This document shows, in pieces, positions 9,368 through 55,900 of a stretch of DNA of 64,000 nt. The notes under the pieces are model-generated. The model was not told the origin of the DNA, searched no databases, and worked only from the letters and a program-made list of their open reading frames with translations. Numbering within the stretch: the stretch's first letter is position 1; the number at the start of each line of letters is the position of its first letter. A program made the translations under genes and the position numbers. Origin of the DNA: Trichosphaerium sp. ATCC 40318 (Eukaryota > Protista > Tubulinea); NCBI GenBank assembly GCA_038496445.1, contig JALMLS010000497.1, positions 1-64,000 on the forward strand, written 5' to 3'.

Positions 9368-10409
9368 ATTGCTTGAGTTGTTTTATGGTGGTTGTTTGTA
9401 AATTATGATTGTACAGCAAGAATTTACTAGACTTTTTTTAGACTTTACAGTAAAACACTTACCGTAAAGTATATTCGCTCTTCTTCCTGTTACAGCTATT
9501 TGTTGTTTGGACCGCATGGCCCTGGCCTGTAATATGTGTTTTTAAAAAAAATTCTGTATTGCGAAAATTGGTATCACAAAAATGTGCCATGCTAAATGCA
9601 TCACATGTGTAAGGATATCCATAGCAATACCTGATACATTGAATTGATTGTTTGTTAATGTAGGGAAAAAAAATATCTATGTAAGTACTTTTGGCGCAAA
9701 CGCTATTGACATGTGTATTGTTACAATTGATCACAGTGGTATTACTATATCATATACCCTGTTTTAAACAAGAAAAGTGTAGAACATCGTGTATAACATC
9801 AGTGTAGATTAGTAAACTGATGTCTTTCAACAAAACTCATTCAACAAACTCCCATATATGAGCCACTCTATTGTGAAGTTAGTTTTCAATAACAACCTGC
9901 GAAGCTATTAAACACAACCATTTAAACCTTCTCAAAGAGACAAATACAAAAATGATAACATGCGCAATGAGGATGACTTTGCTAAAAAAACACTTAAAAA
10001 AGTAAAATATTAAACTCTTTTTTACAGTTGTTGTAGACTACATCACTGTATGTGAATACATAATACATGAACGTAGGTATTCACAATATGTATGGCTACT
10101 ATGCACTCAAGCGTCAAACATTAAAAACGATTTTCAAGAGTGTAAATAATTTTGTTTTAAAAGTGGAGTGCTTACATAATATAGCTCTACTTCATGTGAG
10201 CATAAAAGTAGAAATTCATGTGCGTGCTACAAATCGGGAGTGGCCTTTTAAGAGTACGCTTAACGTTACAATAAAATACCATTACAGGTCAATTTCAATG
10301 CAAACTTGTAAGCTTGATCACTCAAATGTAAAATCAAGCAAGATATAAAACAAGCTTGTAAAAGGTACACTGGTTTTAATTGTTTTCCTCCCTTATTATT
10401 ACGTACAAA

Positions 10410-12353
10410 TCAGATATTATTAGATCGTATTCCTTCACGTATTTCAGCCATCATATTAAACATAAAATGAAGATTATTGAGACTTAGTATCATAGCACCA
10501 AGAGGTTCTTTGTTTTTAAACAAATAATGGACATAGCTATTAAGTTAACTTAGCACTTAAACAGTTACAACAACAGCTACTAAAAAAAGTAAATCATGTA
10601 CCCATAAGAGTACTCTGATATCTCAGGACAGTCTGGGTTAATACTTTTATCAAACATGTGCCTAATGTTATGTGTAAGGGAAAGAAAAAGTTAAAATACT
10701 AAAAGACTAGTTCTCTAAACAACAATAATTACCTAAACTTCTGGTTTGTTATATGAACGAGGCCATCCCTATAGTCTTCGCTTAGCTCAAACACAACTTT
10801 ACATTATAACTGTGTACCTTGTTGTAAGTTGTCCACAACGAGCTGCTCGCGTTGGATAAGCAGAATCGAATGTATCTGTTGTAAGTTAATGTTAATATTA
10901 ACATGTAGACTTTAGTAGTTTTACCAATTCCATATTTAGCGCTTCTTAGTATGTTGCTAGTATCTCCAATACCTATACGCATATAAACATTCAATAGTAA
11001 TTTCTTGATTACAACTGATTGTAACAAAAAACAGTGGTGTACCGAGTAGATGGACAGGTTTTCCTCGAGGTAGAATTGTTGACAAGAAGCCTAATCAAAT
11101 ATTGAGTTTTCATGGTCTTTTATAGACTTATGTACTCAATAACTTCTCTAGATCATCTCCAGTAGCACCCAAAGAACCACCTACACTTGTTACTTTGAAT
11201 TAGCATAGCAAAAATCTCAGAAAATCATTGCGTACCAATTGCGTGACCATCAAAAGGGAGTTGAGTCAAATAATCGACACTATACTTTCTCAGTGTTTCG
11301 TCTGTTCCACCATGAATTATAGAATACATTGCTTGTTGCTTAGGAGATTTAAGATGCTCTATAAGAGATCGTGCTTCCCATCTATCACGTGTGAAATTAG
11401 AAGCATTTCTCAAAGTAAAACGAACTTCACATTACCTATGAGATCTATGCAAAGACTCTTCAAGCTGTTCGTCACTAACATTATGTGCTAATAACTCATC
11501 CAGAGGTATAATTATATCTGAACCAAGTATTTTTTGTGCTTGTATTGTTGACTCTGGTGTTAAAGTGATAATATCTCCTGTACGGTACGACCTGTCGTAA
11601 ATACATCAATTTAATGAAAAATTAATCCTAAAAAAATCATACTTGAATTTAGCTCCTTCTTCGGTGACACCAACAAGTGTAGGTTCATGTGTACTCTTCT
11701 TTGCACCTTTAAGCTCTTTTTGAGAGGTTGTATTGGCCATTGAAAAGACCTGGAAACAAACAACAAATGTCAGAAGTGTTGACACTGTCAGTATCGCTAT
11801 AACTCTCGTACGCACTTGAAAACCTCCAGAATCAGTTATCAGCGGTCTGTCGTAGCTCATAAATTGGTGTAAGCCTCCTGCTTGTTTGATTGTTTCTAAT
11901 CCGGGATATACGAGCATGTGGTATGTATTTACAAACATGAGTGAGCTGCCTTTGGTCGTTAAAAACATTTACTTAAGAACAGCACATTTTTGGTTATTGA
12001 GCTGTTGAGGGCTCTTCTAGTTGCGATTTTACGCGTAAGATGAACTCACCAAGTGATTTAGCATGGCTGGGAAAAACTAACTTCAGAGCAGCCGCTGTGG
12101 CAACAGGAACGAAGCTAGGCGTCTCAATTGCTCCATGAGGGGTCCTTTGACACGATTTAGACTCAATTTATTTGACAAACGTACTGAATAACGCCAACGC
12201 GCGCTAGAGACTTTGTAGATTGGTGTGTTACTTTGAAAGAAAAATAGTCAGGTGGTACACGTTTATCGAACCTTTCGTTAGTAAGTTTCGCCTGGTTAGC
12301 GTTAGAACGCACTCTTTAGGGTCTGTGTAGCCATAATCAGCAAACCGCTTCAT
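10410..12353 (-). CDS. tgt: Queuine tRNA-ribosyltransferase (tRNA-guanine transglycosylase), Chlamydia-like type
   Basis: HGAIETPSFVPVAT, FVNTYHM, ITDSGGFQVFS, GSDIIIPLDEL, IIHGG, FDGHAIGGSLG, PVHLLGIG and DTFDSAYPTRAAR. Confidence 0.93.
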
Positions 12354-12527
12354 AGTCCTGGCGCATTTCGCCGCTACACTAGCCATACTTTGCTACATGA
12401 AGCGTAGTGTTCAAAAAAACTGGACAGGCAGTTAAGGCGGCTTTTTTCGGACTTCGCGCTAATTTTATTTTTACGCCTGAAGCGAGTCTCTGGTGTTACA
12501 TTAATTGTTACAAGCGCCTTCTTCATC

Positions 12528-15500
12528 ATGGAAGCTGACGATGATGTTGTATCTCTTGAAAAGAAAATTGAGGGCCTTAGCCAAAAGGTAGAAAGCAAGA
12601 GAGCGGTAGTAGATGAGCTAAATAAACAAATATCGGCCAAACTGCAAATATTACAACGACACTTCTCCAAAGACGACCTGGCGGATATTCAAGGCCTTAT
12701 TGAGCTTGAAAAAGAAGAGGAGGAGAAATACCTAGATAGCAGGAAGGCGTACTACGCTAAATTAGCCCTATGGCGCTCTAAGGTTATTATCATCCTAAAA
12801 TCGGGCAACAAAACTGCTATTCAACAGTCGTTGTCTGGATCAGCTTTGCTGAGCTCTTCACAATACCTACGGCGCACAATGTCAATGGCAGACGCTGGTG
12901 GAGCTCTACACGACGATTTTGGCACTTGGGAGATTGACAATGATGAAATCAAATTCAAATCTAGTGATTGCATTGGTACGCGTTTACACAGAGTAACTTC
13001 GTAAAACTGCACTCCAACCGCCAGAATTTTTTAGAGAAAGAATGCCAAGTTAACAGAATTAGGTTCTGGTACTTTCGGTACAGTCTACAAAGGAACATGC
13101 CGTGGAAAAAAGGTTGCTGTAAAAGTGCTCAGGAAACAAAACTTCAACCAAAAAGTAATTGAGGACTTTAAACGCGAATGTTCAGTTATGAGGTACGTAA
13201 TAAACGCATTCTACAGCTTTGTAGGTTGACACTAAAAAAACTAGCAAACTGAAGCATCCCAACATTCTCTTATTTATGGGTGCTTGTACTATCGCTGGCA
13301 AGCTTAAAATCGGTAAGTTATTGACACTAAAACGCAAAAGGCGTTATGTTAATTTTATTTGGGTTTTTTTTTTTTTGATTTAACGACGTCTTACTCTTCT
13401 TTAGTCACCGAGGTTGCTGAGAATGGTAGCGTTGAAGATGTTCTAAAGGATAAATCACGTAAATTAAGCTTTCACCGTAAAATGATGATTGCTAAGGACA
13501 CAGCAGCTGTACGCAAGCTCAATTCTGTTTTTATTGTTTAGCTTAAAACAAGTTTCACAGAAAATAGTTTACCCAAAAGTTTTCAACTTTTTTTTTTGTG
13601 ATTTTGATGCTGTAGCTCTTATTGATTGCTTTATTTGTGTTTACTAAATTTTTAGGGTATGACGTGGTTGCATTGTATGAATCCTGTATTACTTCATCTT
13701 GACCTTAAGCCTGCTAATCTATTGGTGAGTTAGGCTTGTCTCGAAATTTTGGATCTTTTTTTCTGTTGTTTTTTTTTTTGGGTGTTCTGTTAACAGTATT
13801 ATTCAAGTTGATGGCTGATTGGTCTGTCAAAATAGCTGATTTTGGTCTATGCACTGTTTTGGATACTCAAAAAGGGTCACAGATTACAGCATCGGGTAAT
13901 TTGTGTTTTGCACTGAATTTACCCATCAACCTAAAGAGAGTTCTTTTTCTTCTTTTGGTTCTTATTTTTTAATATAGGAACACCTGTTTATATGGCCCCA
14001 GAGATGTTTTTAAATGATCCTAAACCCTCAAAGAAATGTGACGTGTTTGCTTTTGGCATAAGTACGAAACTTTTTTTTTTTGGTTTTCTTTTGTTTATTT
14101 TTCGGGTTTCTTCTTGGTGTTTTAAACTGACTCTCGCGCCAATACCATATGAATAGAATGTAAACATTGAAGTTGTATTAATTATTCTCTTAGTTTTGTG
14201 GGAGTTAATATCAGAATTGGTCCCATACGAAGGTCAGTATTCTAATGTTCATCAACTTGTTGGTGCTATTATGGAGAGAGATGTAAGGCCTTCAATACCT
14301 AGATACTGTCCAAGCAAACTTGAGAATTTGATAATGAAGTGCTGGAGTAAAAACCCAGCAGGAAGACCAGGTAAGGAGCAATGCCTCAGGGCGTCATTTG
14401 GTTTAAAAATCTTATGTTTTTTTTAGAATTCAAGTCATTGCTTGACATCTCAATATTCGATGATATTATACTTCAAGCCGTTACAATGGGTAATTCAGAA
14501 TGTACTCGTATGTGGAAGGGTTTTGGAGAGGTATGTATTAATGAACAAAAAACATTGGATTCGTTGAAACATTGAATTTTTGTATTTTCTTTTTGGCGTT
14601 TTTGTGCTTACTTTTGTGTTAGGGTGTTGGTTCTGTACCTTGGAATCACTTCTTAACTGCATTTTGTAAAGTCATTAAGGTCAATAAGTCACCTCTTGAC
14701 CCTCTATTCATTAGTTTAAAGTACGTGAACCAAATCCATTATAATTTATACGGCTGTTTTGTCTTGTTAACACAGTTTTTTTGAAGGTGGGTACTTGATG
14801 TTGACAAGAAGCCAGAACAAGGAAAAGTAACTCTAGAAGCATTTAAAAGATTCTTGCAATGGTTTGGACCAATTACAGCTGGCACAGTTGTTCTCGAACA
14901 CATTCATCAACTCTTGAGTCAAAAGTACGAAAAAACCATTTTATTTTCTTTTCTTTTGCTCTTGATTAATTTTACTTTCAGGTGGTTTCATGGTGTAAAG
15001 AGTGCAGCAGATGCTGAGACAGATTTAAGACGATTTCATAAGAAGGTAACTTCATTTTTATTTCATTTAATTTTTTTTATGGATATATTTCCATGTATCT
15101 TTTTTAATCCTTATGTAACCTTCCTATATTTATATATATATGTATATTAGCGTGGTAAAAAATGCAAGGTATGTTAGATTATTTTACTGCAATAGCAATG
15201 TGTTAAAGCTAATTGTTGTTATTTGTTCTTCTCGCTTTTTTCAGTTTTTTGTTCTTGTTCTCATAATGTTTTAGGGTGGATTCTTAGTACGGTTCAGTTC
15301 TCGTGGAACAGGATCATTTACTATAACATTCTCTAATCGAAAGGATGGTAAGATACTTCATTACCGTGTACCAGATCAACACAAGTATGATTTAATGGGA
15401 TTTGTACGAACTTTCAAAAAGAAAAAGAAGTTGGGCGATCCAGTGCCAAGTCCTTATGAAGGTACTATCTAATACTCCAGAAACAAAACAACCACTTATA

Positions 15501-49920: not shown

Positions 49921-52900
49921 TTATCTACATTGTTCTTGTGTCGGCGCTTTGCAGTAAAAATACGCTGCCTGTTGTCTGTAACATGCTCCATTCTCGTTCT
50001 TAAATCTTGTCGGACCACATATACATGTCTCAGTAGAGCCACAAAGAACCTAAAACAAAAATTAAAACATGAAAAAACCAAAAAAATCACCTCAACACGA
50101 AAAAAAAAAAGTTCCTGAATACAACCCGTCTAAAAATACCAAAGAATAATCATGATATACTTAATTACGATAAAAAGAACATGAATAAAAGCATGTTTCA
50201 AAAATTAACTATATTTATTCGAAATGTCAACGGAAAAAGAACATTGTTTGACGTTTCGAAATTTCCTATCATATTTACAAAAATATCACGTGGAGTTTTT
50301 TTTTGTCGTTTTTGATTTTTTCGGGTCTTTAAAAGGTTTTTTTCAAAAAAACACTTTTGATCCTGAACGTACGATTCCGTGATCAGCCCAAACGCCTGTA
50401 AATAATGCAGCATCGCCTCCGAATGCCGCAGATTGTGCAGAAACTTCAGCAGTACAATGTACACTGTCTGAAGAACAAGAACAATTTCCTTCGCCACTTC
50501 CACATCTACAATTGAATCCATCGCATCTATTTAAAACCAATTAAACCAAGTAAACCAAATAAAAAAACGATCGCTGAGATTAGTAAGAAAAAAACTCCTT
50601 AAGAAGTTAACAAATGTTTGTTGAGCTCTCTTTGTTGTTCTCATTATCTCTTGTTTTTAGCTGTTTGTTATTACGTACTGACAATTTCCAGCTTCGTCTA
50701 ATGTTCCTCCGCATATTTGCTGGCGAGACGGAGCGGATGAAGTAGGATTTACTGTAGGAGGAGATGTTGGAACTTGTGATGGTTGTATTGATACTGGCGC
50801 GTCAGTTGGTGTAGTTCCTGTAGAAGGCGCGTTCACAGTCGCTGGTTGTGATAACGTTGTTGGTGTTAATAGTGTATTTGGTGGTTGGATATTAGGTGCA
50901 AACGTTGGTATCATTGTCGGTGGAGGTGTTACACCAGTTGGAGATCCAAACGGAGTTAATGAAGAAGTAGGAACCAGTATTGAGCTCGGTATTGCCAATG
51001 AACCAGGTACTCGAACAGACGATGGTGTCATAATAGTTGTAGGTGTAGAAATTGTGTTTGGTGCACTGACAGTTGTTGGGATCTGAACTGTCGTTGGTGT
51101 AAAAACAGTGGATGGAGCTGAAATAGTTGAAGGCGAAGAAAATGTCGCTGGTGCTGCTACTGACGTTGGATTCTGAACTGTTGTAGGTGTACCACTTGTG
51201 GTTATTGTCGTAGGTACTGGTAGCGTCACAGGCGAAGCCAACGTGACAGGTGACTGAATTGTTGATGGCGTTGATATAGTTGAGGGTGAAACAACTGTAG
51301 TTGGTGTTATAATTGTTGAAGGGTTTTGGATTGTTGAAGGTGTTGATACAGTTGTAGGTTCACCTACTGTTGATGGTACACCAACTGCACTTGGTGTATT
51401 GGATGTTGTACTTGATGGTGTAACGCTTGTGCTTGGCGCGTTAGAAGTCGATGTTGTAGGTGTAACAGTTGTTGTAACTGAAGGTGTAGCAACTGTTGAG
51501 GGTGTGTTAAGAGTTGCTGGTTGTAATGACGTTGTTGGTGTTAATAGTGTATTTGGTGGTTGGATATTAGGTGCAAACGTTGGTATCATTGTCGGTGGAG
51601 GTGTTGCACCAGTTGGAGATCCAAACGGAGTTAACGAAGAAGTAGGAACCAGTATTGAGCTCGGTATTGCCAATGAACCAGGTACTCGAACAGACGATGG
51701 TGTCATAATAGTTGTAGGTGTAGAAATTGTGTTTGGTGCACTGACAGTTGTTGGGTTCTGAATCGTCGTTGGTGTAAATACAGTCGAGGGTGTTGAGACT
51801 GATGAAGGAGCTGAAACTGTCGACGGTGAAGCGACTGTACCTGGTGTCATTATAGTCGAAGGGTTCTGGACAGTTGATGGCACATCTTGAGAGGTAGGTG
51901 AAGACGTTGTTGTGGCCGGAGATACAATAGTTGATGGTGTTTGAACAGTTGAAGGTGAGTTGATTGTTGTAGGCACTCTGATGGTACTTGGTGTAACTAT
52001 TGTTGAGGGTGTTTGTATTGTGGAAGGTGTGAGTGCCGTTGTTGGTGATATAATCGTATTAGGAGCTCTTACTGTAGCAGGGTTCTGAATTGTTGAAGGT
52101 GTGAAAACAGTAGAAGGTGCTGAAACTGTTGACGGTGTTGTTGCTGGTGCTATAGCTGTTGATGTTGTACCAGGTGATATAACAGTTGAGGGTGAGGACA
52201 CAGTCGAGGGTGAAACAATCGTTGTTGGTGTTGTAACTGTCGAAGGGTTTTGAATAGTTGTAGGTGTGAAAACAGTTGATGGTGTTGAAACAGTTGCAGG
52301 CGAAATGATTGTTGCTGGTTGTGAGTTTATGGAAGGTGATGCACTTGTTGATGGCACACCAATTGTGCTTGGTTCATTGGATGTTGATGGAGTACCACTT
52401 GTGCTTGGCGCATTGGATGTTGATGGTGTAGCACTCGTACTTGGTGCATTGGATGTTGTACTAGATGGTGTAACGCCTGTACTTGGTGCGTTTGATGTTG
52501 TAGGTGTAGCACTCGTTGTTGGAGCGCCAACAGTTGAAGGCGCACTGACTGTTGAAGGAGCACCAACAGTTGTAACAGTTGAAGGTATTACACTTGTTGT
52601 TACTGGGGTGAGGATTGTAGAGGGAACAGAAGCTATTGTAGGTGCGATTGTTGATTGGCTTGTAGGTGAAGCACCAAAGGGTGTAAGTGAAGAAGTAGGA
52701 ACGCTTATTGTGTTGGGCGATGCTATTGAACCAGGTACTTGAATTGTTGATGGTGTGCTTAGTGTAGAAGGCGTTGGAGAGGAAGTTGTTGGTTGACTTG
52801 TTGGAGGCAACGTTGTGGGCGCCATCGTTGGTGGTTGTGTAGTTAGTGATACGATAGGTGCCATAGTTGTAGGGGATCTTGTGGTTGGCGGCTGTGTTGT

Positions 52901-55900
52901 TGGAGCCATAGTTGGAGCAGTTGTAGGCGCTCTTGTTGTTGGTATCACCACAGGAGCTTCTGTTGTTGGAGCCAATGTAGGAGGTAGTGTTGTAGGTGCG
53001 TTTGTTGTCGGTGCGGTTGTTGGTTGTCTGGTTGGTGATTGCGTTGTTGGCTCTGGCACAGGTGGAGCAGTTGGTGCCATAGTTGTTGGAGATCGGGTGG
53101 TCGGAGGACGTGTTGTTGGCTGCATGGTTGGCGCTGTTGTTGGTGGTTGTGTTGTAGGTATCACTACAGGTGCTGATGTGGTTGGAGGCAAAGTTGGAGG
53201 TTGCGTTGTAGGAGCCCTTGTAGTCGGTGGAAGTGTGGTTGGTTGTTGAGTTGGTGCTGTGGTTGGTGCTCTTGATGGTGGATTCGTTGTTGGAGATCTC
53301 GTCGTTGGCGGCAGCGTTGTAGGAACTCGAGTTGGTGCCCTTGTAGGTGATTGCGTTGTTGGCTCTGGTACAGGTGCAGCAGTTGGTGCCATAGTTGTTG
53401 GAGAACGTGTGGTTGGTGGTAGCGTCGTAGGTGGACGAGTTGGGGCACGTGTTGGCGCTCTTGTTGGAGGGTTTGTGGTAGGAGCGCGCGTGGTTGGTGG
53501 TCGTGTTGTAGGAGCGAGTGTGGGTGCTCTTGTTGGCGCTCTTGATGGTGGATTTGTAGTTGGTGCTCGTGTAGTTGGAGGCCGCGTTGTAGGTGGACGA
53601 GTGGGCGCTCTAGTTGGTGCTCTTGTTGGAGGATTTGTGGTTGGAGCACGTGTAGTTGGAGGTCGGGTCGTTGGCGAACGAGTTGGTGCACGTGTAGGTG
53701 CTCGAGTTGGTGCTCGGGTTGGTGCTTGAGTTGGCGCGCGAGTTGGTGCTCGGGTTGGCGCTCGAGTTGGCGGATTTGTAGTAGGAGATCTTGTCGTTGG
53801 TGGCAGTGTTGTAGGAACGCGTGTAGGCGCTGTAGTTGGAGCTCTTGTAGGCGCTCGAGTGGGTGACGCTTCCGTTGGGGAATTTGTTGGGTCCCCTACT
53901 CTGAAAGGCAATTGGTTACTTAAAATACCTTGCGCGGCTACTTCTATTCCACTTAGAGTTCCTGTAACGGTACTGGGTACTCTACAGCTCTAAGTAAGAC
54001 GTTAGTGAACAAAATAAATGAAACAAAAAAAAAAGAAAGATTGAGTACACATCTTTTTTGTACTGAACTTTTTTTGAGTGTAAATGAATAATACCGTAAG
54101 GCACGTTATGTGAAATTTTAAATTTATCACGTGGGGTATGATTTGGAAATTTTGGGTTCAAAAAAAACCGACTCAAAAAAAAAGTTTTGGGTTTTTGGAA
54201 AACAGAAAAAAAAAAAAGAGCTGTACGTGCAACTTCAGATGCCGCGGCATTAACAACAACATTTTCTCCTGTAATAGTTGAAAATAATCCTCCAAATATA
54301 CATGTTACTGTTTCATAAAAGAAAAATCCTCTGACTGTTACTGTATCTCCTGGTCTTACTTGTGTTGGAAAAACCCAAAAGATAGCTGGACAAGGCTCTC
54401 TATTTTCTATTGAACAAAAATCACGTGTTAGCGAAACAAAAAAAAGGGTTTTGTGGTTTTTTCGGTACTTACCTGGTAGTGTCCATCCAAGTCTATGAAA
54501 TACGTTCACATCATTTAAACTGAATCCAGGTACTTCGTTTGGACTTATCACAGGGTCCATGATACCTTTTCATCGCAAGTTAGAAATTTCTTTCGCTTTT
54601 TTTTTTTAGTTTTGCTTTGAATTGACCTTACCTAAGTTCCTGCCATCTCTCCATGAATCCGCAGGGTTACCATCTCCCGTGAGACCCGAAGAAAATTCGA
54701 TACCTCGAGGATCAGCATCACTATTAGTGAAATACATTGCTCGTTGACCTGAAAGTAAAGAAAATTAGAAATCGTACCAGAGAAGAAAACCTTGATTACC
54801 TGGAGTCAACATGCGCGGTGTTCCAAACCAACTAGGATCTGACGTAATCGGGTACCTGTATAAATCCAAAACAGTTGGATATACAGAAGTAGAAGGACCC
54901 ATTGGGTTTTCAACTAAACGCGAACTAATTAGTCACAAATAAACAATAAAGTAACGTTACTTCGTGTTGTATCTGATATAAATCCTAACACGTGTCCTAT
55001 TTCTCTTACAAGTACTCCCAAACCATCAACAGCTCCCTTTTAGATGTTGGTAAACAGCAGAGATAATAATCGACGTACATTTTCTACAGGAGTTGTAGTA
55101 TCCCAATCGAAATTTGCTGAATTTGATAAAGTAATAACACCATCTGTTACGCCGTTCTGGGAATCGAATTGATTGGCATTCCCAGGAAATAACATCTAAA
55201 CGCCATTGAGTGCATGTTAGGAACGTGATCATAAAACTGATTAAGCAAAACAGCAAAGAAAGAAACGATAAAACACGTGGCTGCGGGTTGGTGCTGGTTA
55301 TTATTTACCTTTGCCACAGTTTTTGCAGGACCCATTTGTGTTGGCGGTTGAAATAGGGATGGTATTGTAAATTCTGGATCTCTAGGGTACATTCCTACAG
55401 GGAAGAATCTTTGTTCGAGTACTGTACTGTACAATTGAGTAAATAAATGAAGGATATTAAGAAGGAAATCGAAAGGTGAGAAACAAAACGTAACATCAAG
55501 GTAAATAACGTACGTCAATTCTGCTGTATCAATACCCATAACCCTTGTTACTGTAGTTTGTGCAAGGTTCAAGAAGTTTGGTACTGATCCAAATTGTACT
55601 GTAATAGATATGCGTTGATCATCAATAATCATTTGTTCCTTAATATACATAAACTAACGCCAAAGTTCATTGTGATGTATTACGTACCCACACAAATATA
55701 GCTGCTTGTACGGCTTCTTCAAAGCCTTCTACCTACAGCAACGATAAGTTTATTATGCATAATGGTATCACGTGCGCTTTGTGATCCTCCTGCAAAGGTA
55801 ACTTGAAAATCTATATCTGAAGTATATCCGCCTGTGGTAGGATCAGTACTTGCCCTATTATGTTATAAGAAATTTTGCACTAAGAGTTGATTTCGTACCT

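Follow-up and report, generated by a model that had tools for sequence, protein, structure and literature searches.

The DNA analysed here (the window) comprises positions 1 to 64,000 of contig JALMLS010000497.1 from Trichosphaerium sp. ATCC 40318 (GenBank assembly GCA_038496445.1). At 10410-12386, its minus strand carries a 14-exon gene for a 406-aa tRNA-guanine transglycosylase (TGT). The protein is of the bacterial type and retains every catalytic and substrate-pocket residue, and three of the four ligands of its structural zinc site are lost. We consider it likely, though well short of certain, that the gene is an amoebozoan member of the bacterial-like TGT (BL-TGT) family, and that its product is imported into an organelle, exchanges G34 for queuine or preQ1 and is active without zinc, the metal having been lost in the organism's own lineage.

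Gene structure and transcripts

The gene was modelled by eye and from homology, with open stretches on the minus strand of 9800-13000 joined at GT-AG boundaries. A single continuous frame runs from an ATG at 12386 to a stop codon at 10410-10412, and the 13 introns (40-100 nt each) are all GT-AG. The exons, with the first and last introns, are as follows (residue numbers are those of the Zymomonas TGT).

12313..12386, minus strand, exon 1 (predicted by splice enumeration and a frame check), encodes MASVAAKCARTMKRFADYGYTDPKE
12272..12312, minus strand, intron 1 (predicted), 41 nt, GTGCGT...TACTAAC...AG
12185..12271, minus strand, exon 2, FDKRVPPDYFSFKVTHQSTKSLARVGVI(Q), conserved TGT core begins here
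12050..12144, minus strand, exon 3, TPHGAIETPSFVPVATAAALK..., Pfam TGT E 7.7e-4
11816..11949, minus strand, exon 4, LMFVNTYH...GGLHQF...TDSGGFQ, Pfam E 1.9e-12, Asp102 equivalent at 11831-11833 (PDB alignment)
11643..11749, minus strand, exon 5, VFSMANTTSQKELKGAKKSTHEPTLVGVTEEGAKF, insertion of about 20 residues typical of the bacterial-like TGT clade
11436..11591, minus strand, exon 6, SYRTGD...DIIIPLDEL..., Asp156 equivalent at 11498-11500, Leu at the Cys158 position (11492-11494)
11236..11381, minus strand, exon 7, WEARSL...IHGG...LPFDGHAI, a contig covers 11252-11385
11136..11180, minus strand, exon 8, GGSLGATGDDLEKLL, pocket motif GGSLG with Gly at the Val233 position (11167-11169)
11043..11090, minus strand, exon 9, FLSTILPRGKPVHLLG
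10925..10972, minus strand, exon 10, IGDTSNILRSAKYGI
10818..10875, minus strand, exon 11, DTFDSAYPTRAARCGQLTTR, equivalent of the nucleophile Asp280 at 10865-10867
10733..10768, minus strand, exon 12, DGLVHITNQKFR
10602..10661, minus strand, exon 13, HMFDKSINPDCPEISEYSYG, degenerate zinc knuckle, covered by spliced contigs of both runs with 0 differences
10537..10601, minus strand, last intron, 65 nt, GT..AG, spliced out in two public runs
10410..10536, minus strand, exon 14, YVHYLFKNKEPLGAMILSLNNLHFMFNMMAEIREGIRSNNI and stop codon, Asn at 10476-10478

All of the motifs quoted in an earlier note on this DNA (LMFVNTYH, GGLHQF, DSGGFQVFS, KSYR, DIIIPLDEL, WEARSL, IHGG, LPFDGHAIGGSLG and DSAYPT) are present, and three of them cross splice junctions, in keeping with its description of the gene as intron-rich. 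Exon pieces match the Pfam TGT profile PF01702 (E 1.9e-12, 2.8e-9, 1.2e-6 and 9.1e-9), five of them at profile positions 10-37, 44-85, 107-154, 158-202 and 304-343, and the same five also match NCBIfam TIGR00430. When the complete model was compared with 78 bacterial TGTs by local BLAST, it aligned from residue 17 to its end at 45-53 % identity with no internal breaks, and hence no exon seems to be missing. Identity in the end-to-end alignments with bacterial TGTs was 47-52 %.

For the 5' end, the possible GT..AG pairs that link an upstream ATG to the FSFKV frame were enumerated. Joining exons 1 and 2 gives the N-terminus MASVAAKCARTMKRFADYGYTDPKE|FDKRVPPDYFSFKV, with YGYTDPKE|F bridging the junction. 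Just upstream of the TGT core, the closest eukaryotic relatives read YGYPDPQSF, YGYPNPQSF or GYPDPQLF, and the match of YGYTDPKEF to these stretches supports this splice. The donor of intron 1, GTGCGT, is also that of the 66-nt intron at 11750-11815, and a branch-point-like canonical TACTAAC lies just before the acceptor. An alternative 5' model with an 86-nt intron (MAS|AKLTNERF...) was dropped, as the YGYxDPxxF motif is restored only by the 41-nt intron. The range 10410-12353 proposed in the earlier note begins at the second ATG (12353), and the true start of the gene is probably 33 nt upstream of it.

Contigs from small shares of two public runs (X1 and X2, only guessed to be RNA) were aligned to 10300-12600. 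The X1 contig covers 10391-10536 and 10602-10637, and an X2 contig covers 10432-10536 and 10602-10655 with no differing letter. Both have the spliced joint 10536|10602, and the 65 nt skipped there are bounded by CT..AC on the plus strand and hence by GT..AG on the gene strand. A second X2 contig covers 11252-11385 and then continues with 17 letters that are the reverse complement of the upstream exon end at 11436, bridging 11436|11381. X2 is listed with two differences from the window (11294 and 11339), both synonymous and at third positions. The 3' part of the TGT gene is spliced and transcribed.

Active site and zinc site

The equivalents of Asp102 and Asp280 are kept (in TDSGGFQ and DTFDS) and fall in alignment columns common to all 63 rows; in Zymomonas numbering, Asp102 is the general acid/base and Asp280 the nucleophile (PMC4425180). 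The active-site stretches TDSGGFQVFS (Asp102), IIIPLDELLA (Asp156, with Leu for Cys158), AIGGSLG (Gly for Val233) and IDTFDSAYPTR (Asp280) are identical or nearly identical to those of chlamydial and amoebozoan proteins. Leu at the Cys158 position and Gly at the Val233 position are common to all BL-TGTs and to the queuine-inserting Chlamydia trachomatis enzyme (PMC12301720), and a queuine-type pocket with these residues is also described in PMC11570991. The C. trachomatis-type TGT inserts queuine directly (Yuan et al. 2019, as cited in PMC11570991 and PMC12301720). Trichosphaerium TGT carries the BL-TGT pocket signature (PLDEL and GGSLG), and the insertion of about 20 residues after DSGGFQVFS aligns with that of Chlamydiae and Dependentiae TGTs, and Thermotoga TGT lacks it. 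The positions of Tyr330 and His333 in Zymomonas TGT, which belong to the aromatic dimer-interface cluster, are both Tyr in the aligned Trichosphaerium protein. Apart from the zinc site, nothing in the protein as predicted points to loss of function, catalytic and pocket residues being intact.

The PLDEL exon (11438-11590, minus strand) scores about 30 bits against human and mouse QTRT1 and about 19 bits against Zymomonas TGT, the reverse of the other exons. In its queuine-pocket region, BL-TGT locally resembles QTRT1.

The zinc region reads INPDCPEISEYSYG|YVHYLF...SLNNLHF. In place of CxCxxC...H it has DCPEISE...N, so that one Cys remains (10628-10630), His has become Asn and three of the four ligands are lost. 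The Zymomonas ligands include Cys318, Cys320 and Cys323 (bioRxiv 10.1101/2020.09.01.277731). The knuckle pattern in relatives is D-x-x-C-x-C-x-x-C-x-x-Y-[ST]-x-[AG]-Y; that in the window, N-P-D-C-P-E-I-S-E-Y-S-Y-G-Y, is two residues shorter. MAFFT sets the single Cys opposite the first or the second ligand, depending on the sequence set, and an ungapped register gives C-x-E-x-x-E (Glu codons at 10622-10624 and 10613-10615), mimicking the ligand spacing; in any register there is at most one Cys, and the His is Asn. This Asn (10476-10478) stands opposite the HN of Thermotoga TGT and opposite His349, the fourth zinc ligand of Zymomonas TGT (HMMER alignment of the last exon, with ...LSLNNLHF in the window vs ...MTEHNIAF and ...LTIHNINF in the Zymomonas and Thermotoga chains). 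The structural site Cys318/Cys320/Cys323/His349 is thus lacking in Trichosphaerium TGT, as the earlier note had claimed on finding a single Cys, and the spliced contigs bear this out; the missed exon restoring CxCxxC that would have contradicted the earlier note was not found.

CxCxxC was found in 75 of the 78 bacterial open reading frames (ORFs) from the one-exon genome scan described below, the exceptions being L080, which is cut off at the locus end, L041 and L069. It is kept in all 120 word-search matches. All amoebozoan relatives, including the environmental contig L081, read C,C,C,H, and on these sequences the loss is therefore specific to the Trichosphaerium lineage within Amoebozoa. 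Since chlamydial TGTs retain CxCxxC...H, the loss of zinc is not a feature of that group. The environmental eukaryote sequences L087-L089 also read C,C,C,H after removal of an intron that splits CxCxx|C. In these (L087:2100-2400, L088:4050-4420 and L089:4150-4510), the intron lies inside the knuckle (...VEGCxCPT, intron, C..HSAAYVHHLF), and prokaryote-style gene calls truncate the protein, which then falsely appears zinc-less.

Other TGTs also lack the CxCxxC cysteines. One such clade contains Porphyridium (P. purpureum KAA8493045.1), Pyropia (P. vietnamensis GAB0496695.1), Cyanidium caldarium, Bigelowiella and P0138, and the grouping of these zinc-less proteins (P0122, P0129, P0328, P0314 and P0138) suggests an old loss. 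P0146 with P0170, and a trio of bacterial length (P0317, P0339 and P0377), are further cases. The fourth-ligand His is kept in all of the other TGTs that lack the motif except P0138, which has Cys. On the tree, the zinc-site states need at least five changes. In the canonical group, P0162 has GHHHEHTSH in place of CxCxxC, with the His kept, and this may be a His-based replacement of the metal site. P0317 is a zinc-less BL-TGT on a bacterial metagenome contig (L086:2692-5116), with the knuckle SLAPVC and the His retained. Its gene overlaps the end of another that encodes CTP_transf_1 and Vut_1 (PF02592, YhhQ/QPTR family) domains, and the locus looks like a working queuine/preQ salvage operon in which the TGT has no Cys3 site. 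We did not find mention of zinc-less TGTs in the limited set of literature searched, which is not proof of novelty.

Trichosphaerium TGT might be a decaying or repurposed pseudo-enzyme, in which the loss of the knuckle destroyed tRNA binding or dimerization, with the gene on its way out or in a non-catalytic role. The loss of three ligands from a shortened knuckle whose zinc residues are otherwise highly conserved (PMC4425180) fits this, as does a terminal branch (0.84) that is the longest in the amoebozoan subclade. However, the ORF is intact over 14 exons, every catalytic and pocket residue is kept, and Tyr and Tyr occupy the Tyr330/His333 positions. In addition, spliced transcripts were seen in two runs with only synonymous differences listed, and the zinc-less state is maintained in other lineages, across three red algal classes and in a bacterial operon that also encodes a queuosine-precursor-type transporter. 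On balance, we regard a pseudo-enzyme as unlikely, though a fair alternative.

Relatives and origin

TGTs of chlamydial type in eukaryotes are already published as a family, now called BL-TGT (Moustafa et al. 2008, Fig. 2B, PMC2376095; Manna & Harman 2016, as cited in PMC12301720 and PMC13305018), and the Trichosphaerium gene adds another amoebozoan member. In the queuine tRNA-ribosyltransferase tree of Moustafa et al. 2008, red algae, chromalveolates and prasinophytes group with Chlamydiae, and the protein is listed as mitochondrial (PMC2376095). The group was named BL-TGT in a 2025 Chloropicon paper (PMC12301720), in which Manna & Harman 2016 is cited for its occurrence in 'diverse algae and protozoa' and its chlamydial origin. 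The case of Acanthamoeba is covered in a 2026 review (PMC13305018). Besides Dictyostelium and Acanthamoeba, the family includes jakobid, choanoflagellate, and red and green algal members.

When bacterial and archaeal genomes were scanned with a single exon, the best matches were (55-67 % on the exon) in Dependentiae/Babeliales, Chlamydiae, Berkiella, Coxiellaceae, Legionellales and a Rickettsiaceae metagenome-assembled genome (MAG), all bacteria that live inside protists. For an exhaustive profile search, the query alignment consisted of four bacterial relatives and eight exon pieces from the window, and a further query alignment combined P0141 with window exon pieces. The top matches were proteins with N-terminal extensions, the named ones being from Porphyridium, Pyropia, Andalucia godoyi, the choanoflagellates Helgoeca and Salpingoeca, Dictyostelium (DDB_G0275613) and an MMETSP transcript. 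A second word search added Vermamoeba, Nematostelium, Cavostelium, Bigelowiella and Cyanidium; no protein of this window itself was returned by the word searches. Trichosphaerium TGT is a bacterial-type TGT and not QTRT1, as the earlier note had proposed, and its nearest bacterial counterparts are those of Chlamydiae and other intracellular groups (47-54 % full-length identity). It is 54 % identical to L081 and 52 % identical to the Vermamoeba cluster, values that bacterial TGTs do not surpass.

Three trees were built from the joined model, two careful ones (LG+C20+F+G4) and a quick one that included the QTRT1-like P0216 (534 bits to human QTRT1); the composition of several rows deviates. In both careful trees, a 100/99 branch parts the BL-TGTs, including Trichosphaerium TGT, from canonical bacterial TGTs, and the Chlamydiae/Dependentiae/Legionellales/Rickettsiaceae TGTs form their own clade (91-92/97). 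Trichosphaerium TGT joins L081 and Dictyostelium in the first (99/92). In the second, it lies within a clade of Nematostelium, Cavostelium, Dictyostelium, the Vermamoeba cluster and environmental eukaryote contigs (82/92, 81/90 and 98/77). Its terminal branch (0.68-0.84) exceeds the tree medians (about 0.5) and is not flagged as long. In the quick tree, P0216, the one QTRT1 sequence, joins the canonical TGTs, separated by a 99 % branch from Trichosphaerium TGT, which stays in the amoebozoan BL-TGT subclade. The grouping with canonical QTRT1 that would have contradicted the earlier note was thus not recovered.

With the canonical bacterial TGTs as the root, a single clade unites those of Chlamydiae, Dependentiae, Legionellales/Berkiella/Coxiellaceae, Rickettsiaceae and Chromulinivoraceae, and the eukaryotic lineages (Andalucia, choanoflagellates, Amoebozoa and red algae) branch around or below it. 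A direction of transfer from Chlamydiae to eukaryotes is not evident in these trees, which have a weak backbone and long branches.

Two further characters bear on ancestry. The N-terminal motif YGY[PT]DPxxF is common to the eukaryotic relatives and is eukaryote-only. The intron that follows exon 2, after ...ARVG.I[QH], lies within 1 nt of an intron in L081, a further hint of shared eukaryotic ancestry. Given these characters and the placement in the amoebozoan subclade, vertical inheritance within Amoebozoa looks to be a better fit than a separate transfer.

The earlier note had instead favoured a transfer from a chlamydial symbiont, and this organism or its recent ancestors might have taken the gene directly from such a source, independently of other eukaryotes. 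The best bacterial matches (Chlamydiae, Dependentiae and Berkiella) are all intracellular in protists, and a chlamydial origin has been published for the family as a whole (PMC2376095; Manna & Harman 2016, as cited in PMC12301720). Holding Trichosphaerium TGT with the bacterial clade was also not rejected by an approximately unbiased (AU) test (log-likelihood difference 28.7, p = 0.13). However, the best trees place the protein among Amoebozoa and apart from the 92/97 bacterial clade, not inside Chlamydiae, and no bacterium exceeds L081 or the Vermamoeba cluster in identity. The eukaryote-only motif and the intron position in common with L081 count against it as well, and the 13 introns argue for long residence in a nucleus. 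We therefore hold a recent direct transfer to be quite improbable.

Proposed function and comparison with known systems

Inheritance within Amoebozoa and retention of activity are combined in the reading that we prefer. The nuclear, intron-bearing gene would encode a bacterial-type TGT, related to those of Chlamydiae, Dependentiae and Legionellales, which would be imported into an organelle, most likely the mitochondrion. There, G34 of the GUN-anticodon tRNAs (Asp, Asn, His and Tyr) would be exchanged for queuine, or possibly preQ1, by the usual ping-pong chemistry with an Asp nucleophile. The enzyme would still be active without zinc, its C-terminal subdomain being held by other contacts, and the zinc would have been lost within this amoeba's own lineage. 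The N-terminal extension is 34 residues long; its first 16 residues, in the predicted exon 1, include four basic and no acidic residues and may be compatible with a short mitochondrial presequence. Most annotated members of the family are labelled mitochondrial, the relative from Andalucia godoyi as a mitochondrial queuine tRNA-ribosyltransferase, and an organellar role is plausible on sequence grounds.

Several points weigh against this proposal. The extension is short, with only about 17 residues ahead of the conserved motif, and no RNA supports exon 1. Transcripts confirm just two of the 13 junctions (10536|10602 and 11436|11381), in runs presumed to be RNA. Altering the zinc ligands of Escherichia coli TGT in the mutagenesis study of Chong and colleagues (1995) reportedly led to loss of zinc and of activity. 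Replacement of His by Asn was seen only in Trichosphaerium TGT among the sequences compared. The amoebozoan placement is moderately supported on a weak BL-TGT backbone, and the AU test did not reject a grouping with the bacterial clade. The zinc site is, moreover, described as highly conserved across TGT, QTRT1 and even QTRT2 (PMC4425180).

That the zinc-less appearance is an annotation artefact, with a missed or alternative exon supplying CxCxxC...H, is barely credible; short C-terminal exons and the reliance of the model on the eye and on homology speak for it, but spliced contigs of two independent runs read through the knuckle (FDKSINPDCPEISEYSYG|YVHYLF...SLNNL) without a difference from the window.

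The broader proposition is that an active, zinc-free TGT occurs here and that the knuckle has been dropped repeatedly in the organellar/endosymbiont-type clade (in this amoeba, in red algae and Bigelowiella, in other protists and in one bacterial lineage), the metal site being dispensable on this scaffold. We see this as evenly balanced. More speculatively, the C-P-E-I-S-E register would make the site ligand-swapped (Cys/Glu/Glu/Asn) and able to bind a different, harder metal.

The mildly useful part of these findings, which open no long-standing question, is the zinc site. Cys3His is treated as conserved family-wide in TGT reviews, even for the non-catalytic QTRT2, and it is gone from a transcribed and otherwise intact gene, and independently from several other lineages. 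If active, these proteins would be natural experiments on the role of the zinc subdomain in tRNA binding, dimer stability or folding, and would caution against use of the zinc motif as an annotation criterion for TGTs.

Elsewhere in the window, a 158-codon ORF for an acidic coiled-coil-like protein (MEADDDVVSLEKKIEGL...) at 12528-13004 on the plus strand diverges from the TGT gene, 141 nt from its start codon. It is probably transcribed, an X1 contig covering 12533-12600, and the two genes may share a bidirectional promoter. At 50001-54000, the G+C content rises to 0.40-0.50 and the GC skew to 0.26-0.47 over a 1084-codon ORF on the minus strand (50657-53911).

Among known systems, eukaryotic BL-TGTs such as those of Dictyostelium (DDB_G0275613) and Andalucia are the most similar to Trichosphaerium TGT, with the same clade, the insertion of about 20 residues, the PLDEL/GGSLG pocket, the FDS motif, an N-terminal extension and a nuclear, intron-bearing gene in common. 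However, the amoebozoan, jakobid and choanoflagellate members examined keep CxCxxC...HN where Trichosphaerium TGT has one Cys and an Asn, and their extensions are mostly longer. The C. trachomatis-type TGT (Trichosphaerium TGT is about 48 % identical to that of L079, a MAG labelled C. trachomatis) has identical pocket residues, which makes queuine a plausible substrate of Trichosphaerium TGT. Unlike the latter, which is not nested in Chlamydiae, it keeps the zinc site and has neither introns nor an N-terminal extension. The red algal BL-TGTs and P0317, P0339 and P0377 likewise lack the CxCxxC cysteines, with 0-1 Cys in the knuckle, but their losses are independent on the tree and they keep the His that is Asn in Trichosphaerium. 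QTRT1 and QTRT2 belong to the same superfamily with the same chemistry, and Gly at the Val233 position leaves space for queuine; QTRT1 retains its zinc site and falls on the canonical side of the 99-100 % branch, whereas Trichosphaerium TGT has the BL-TGT insertion and FDS motif.

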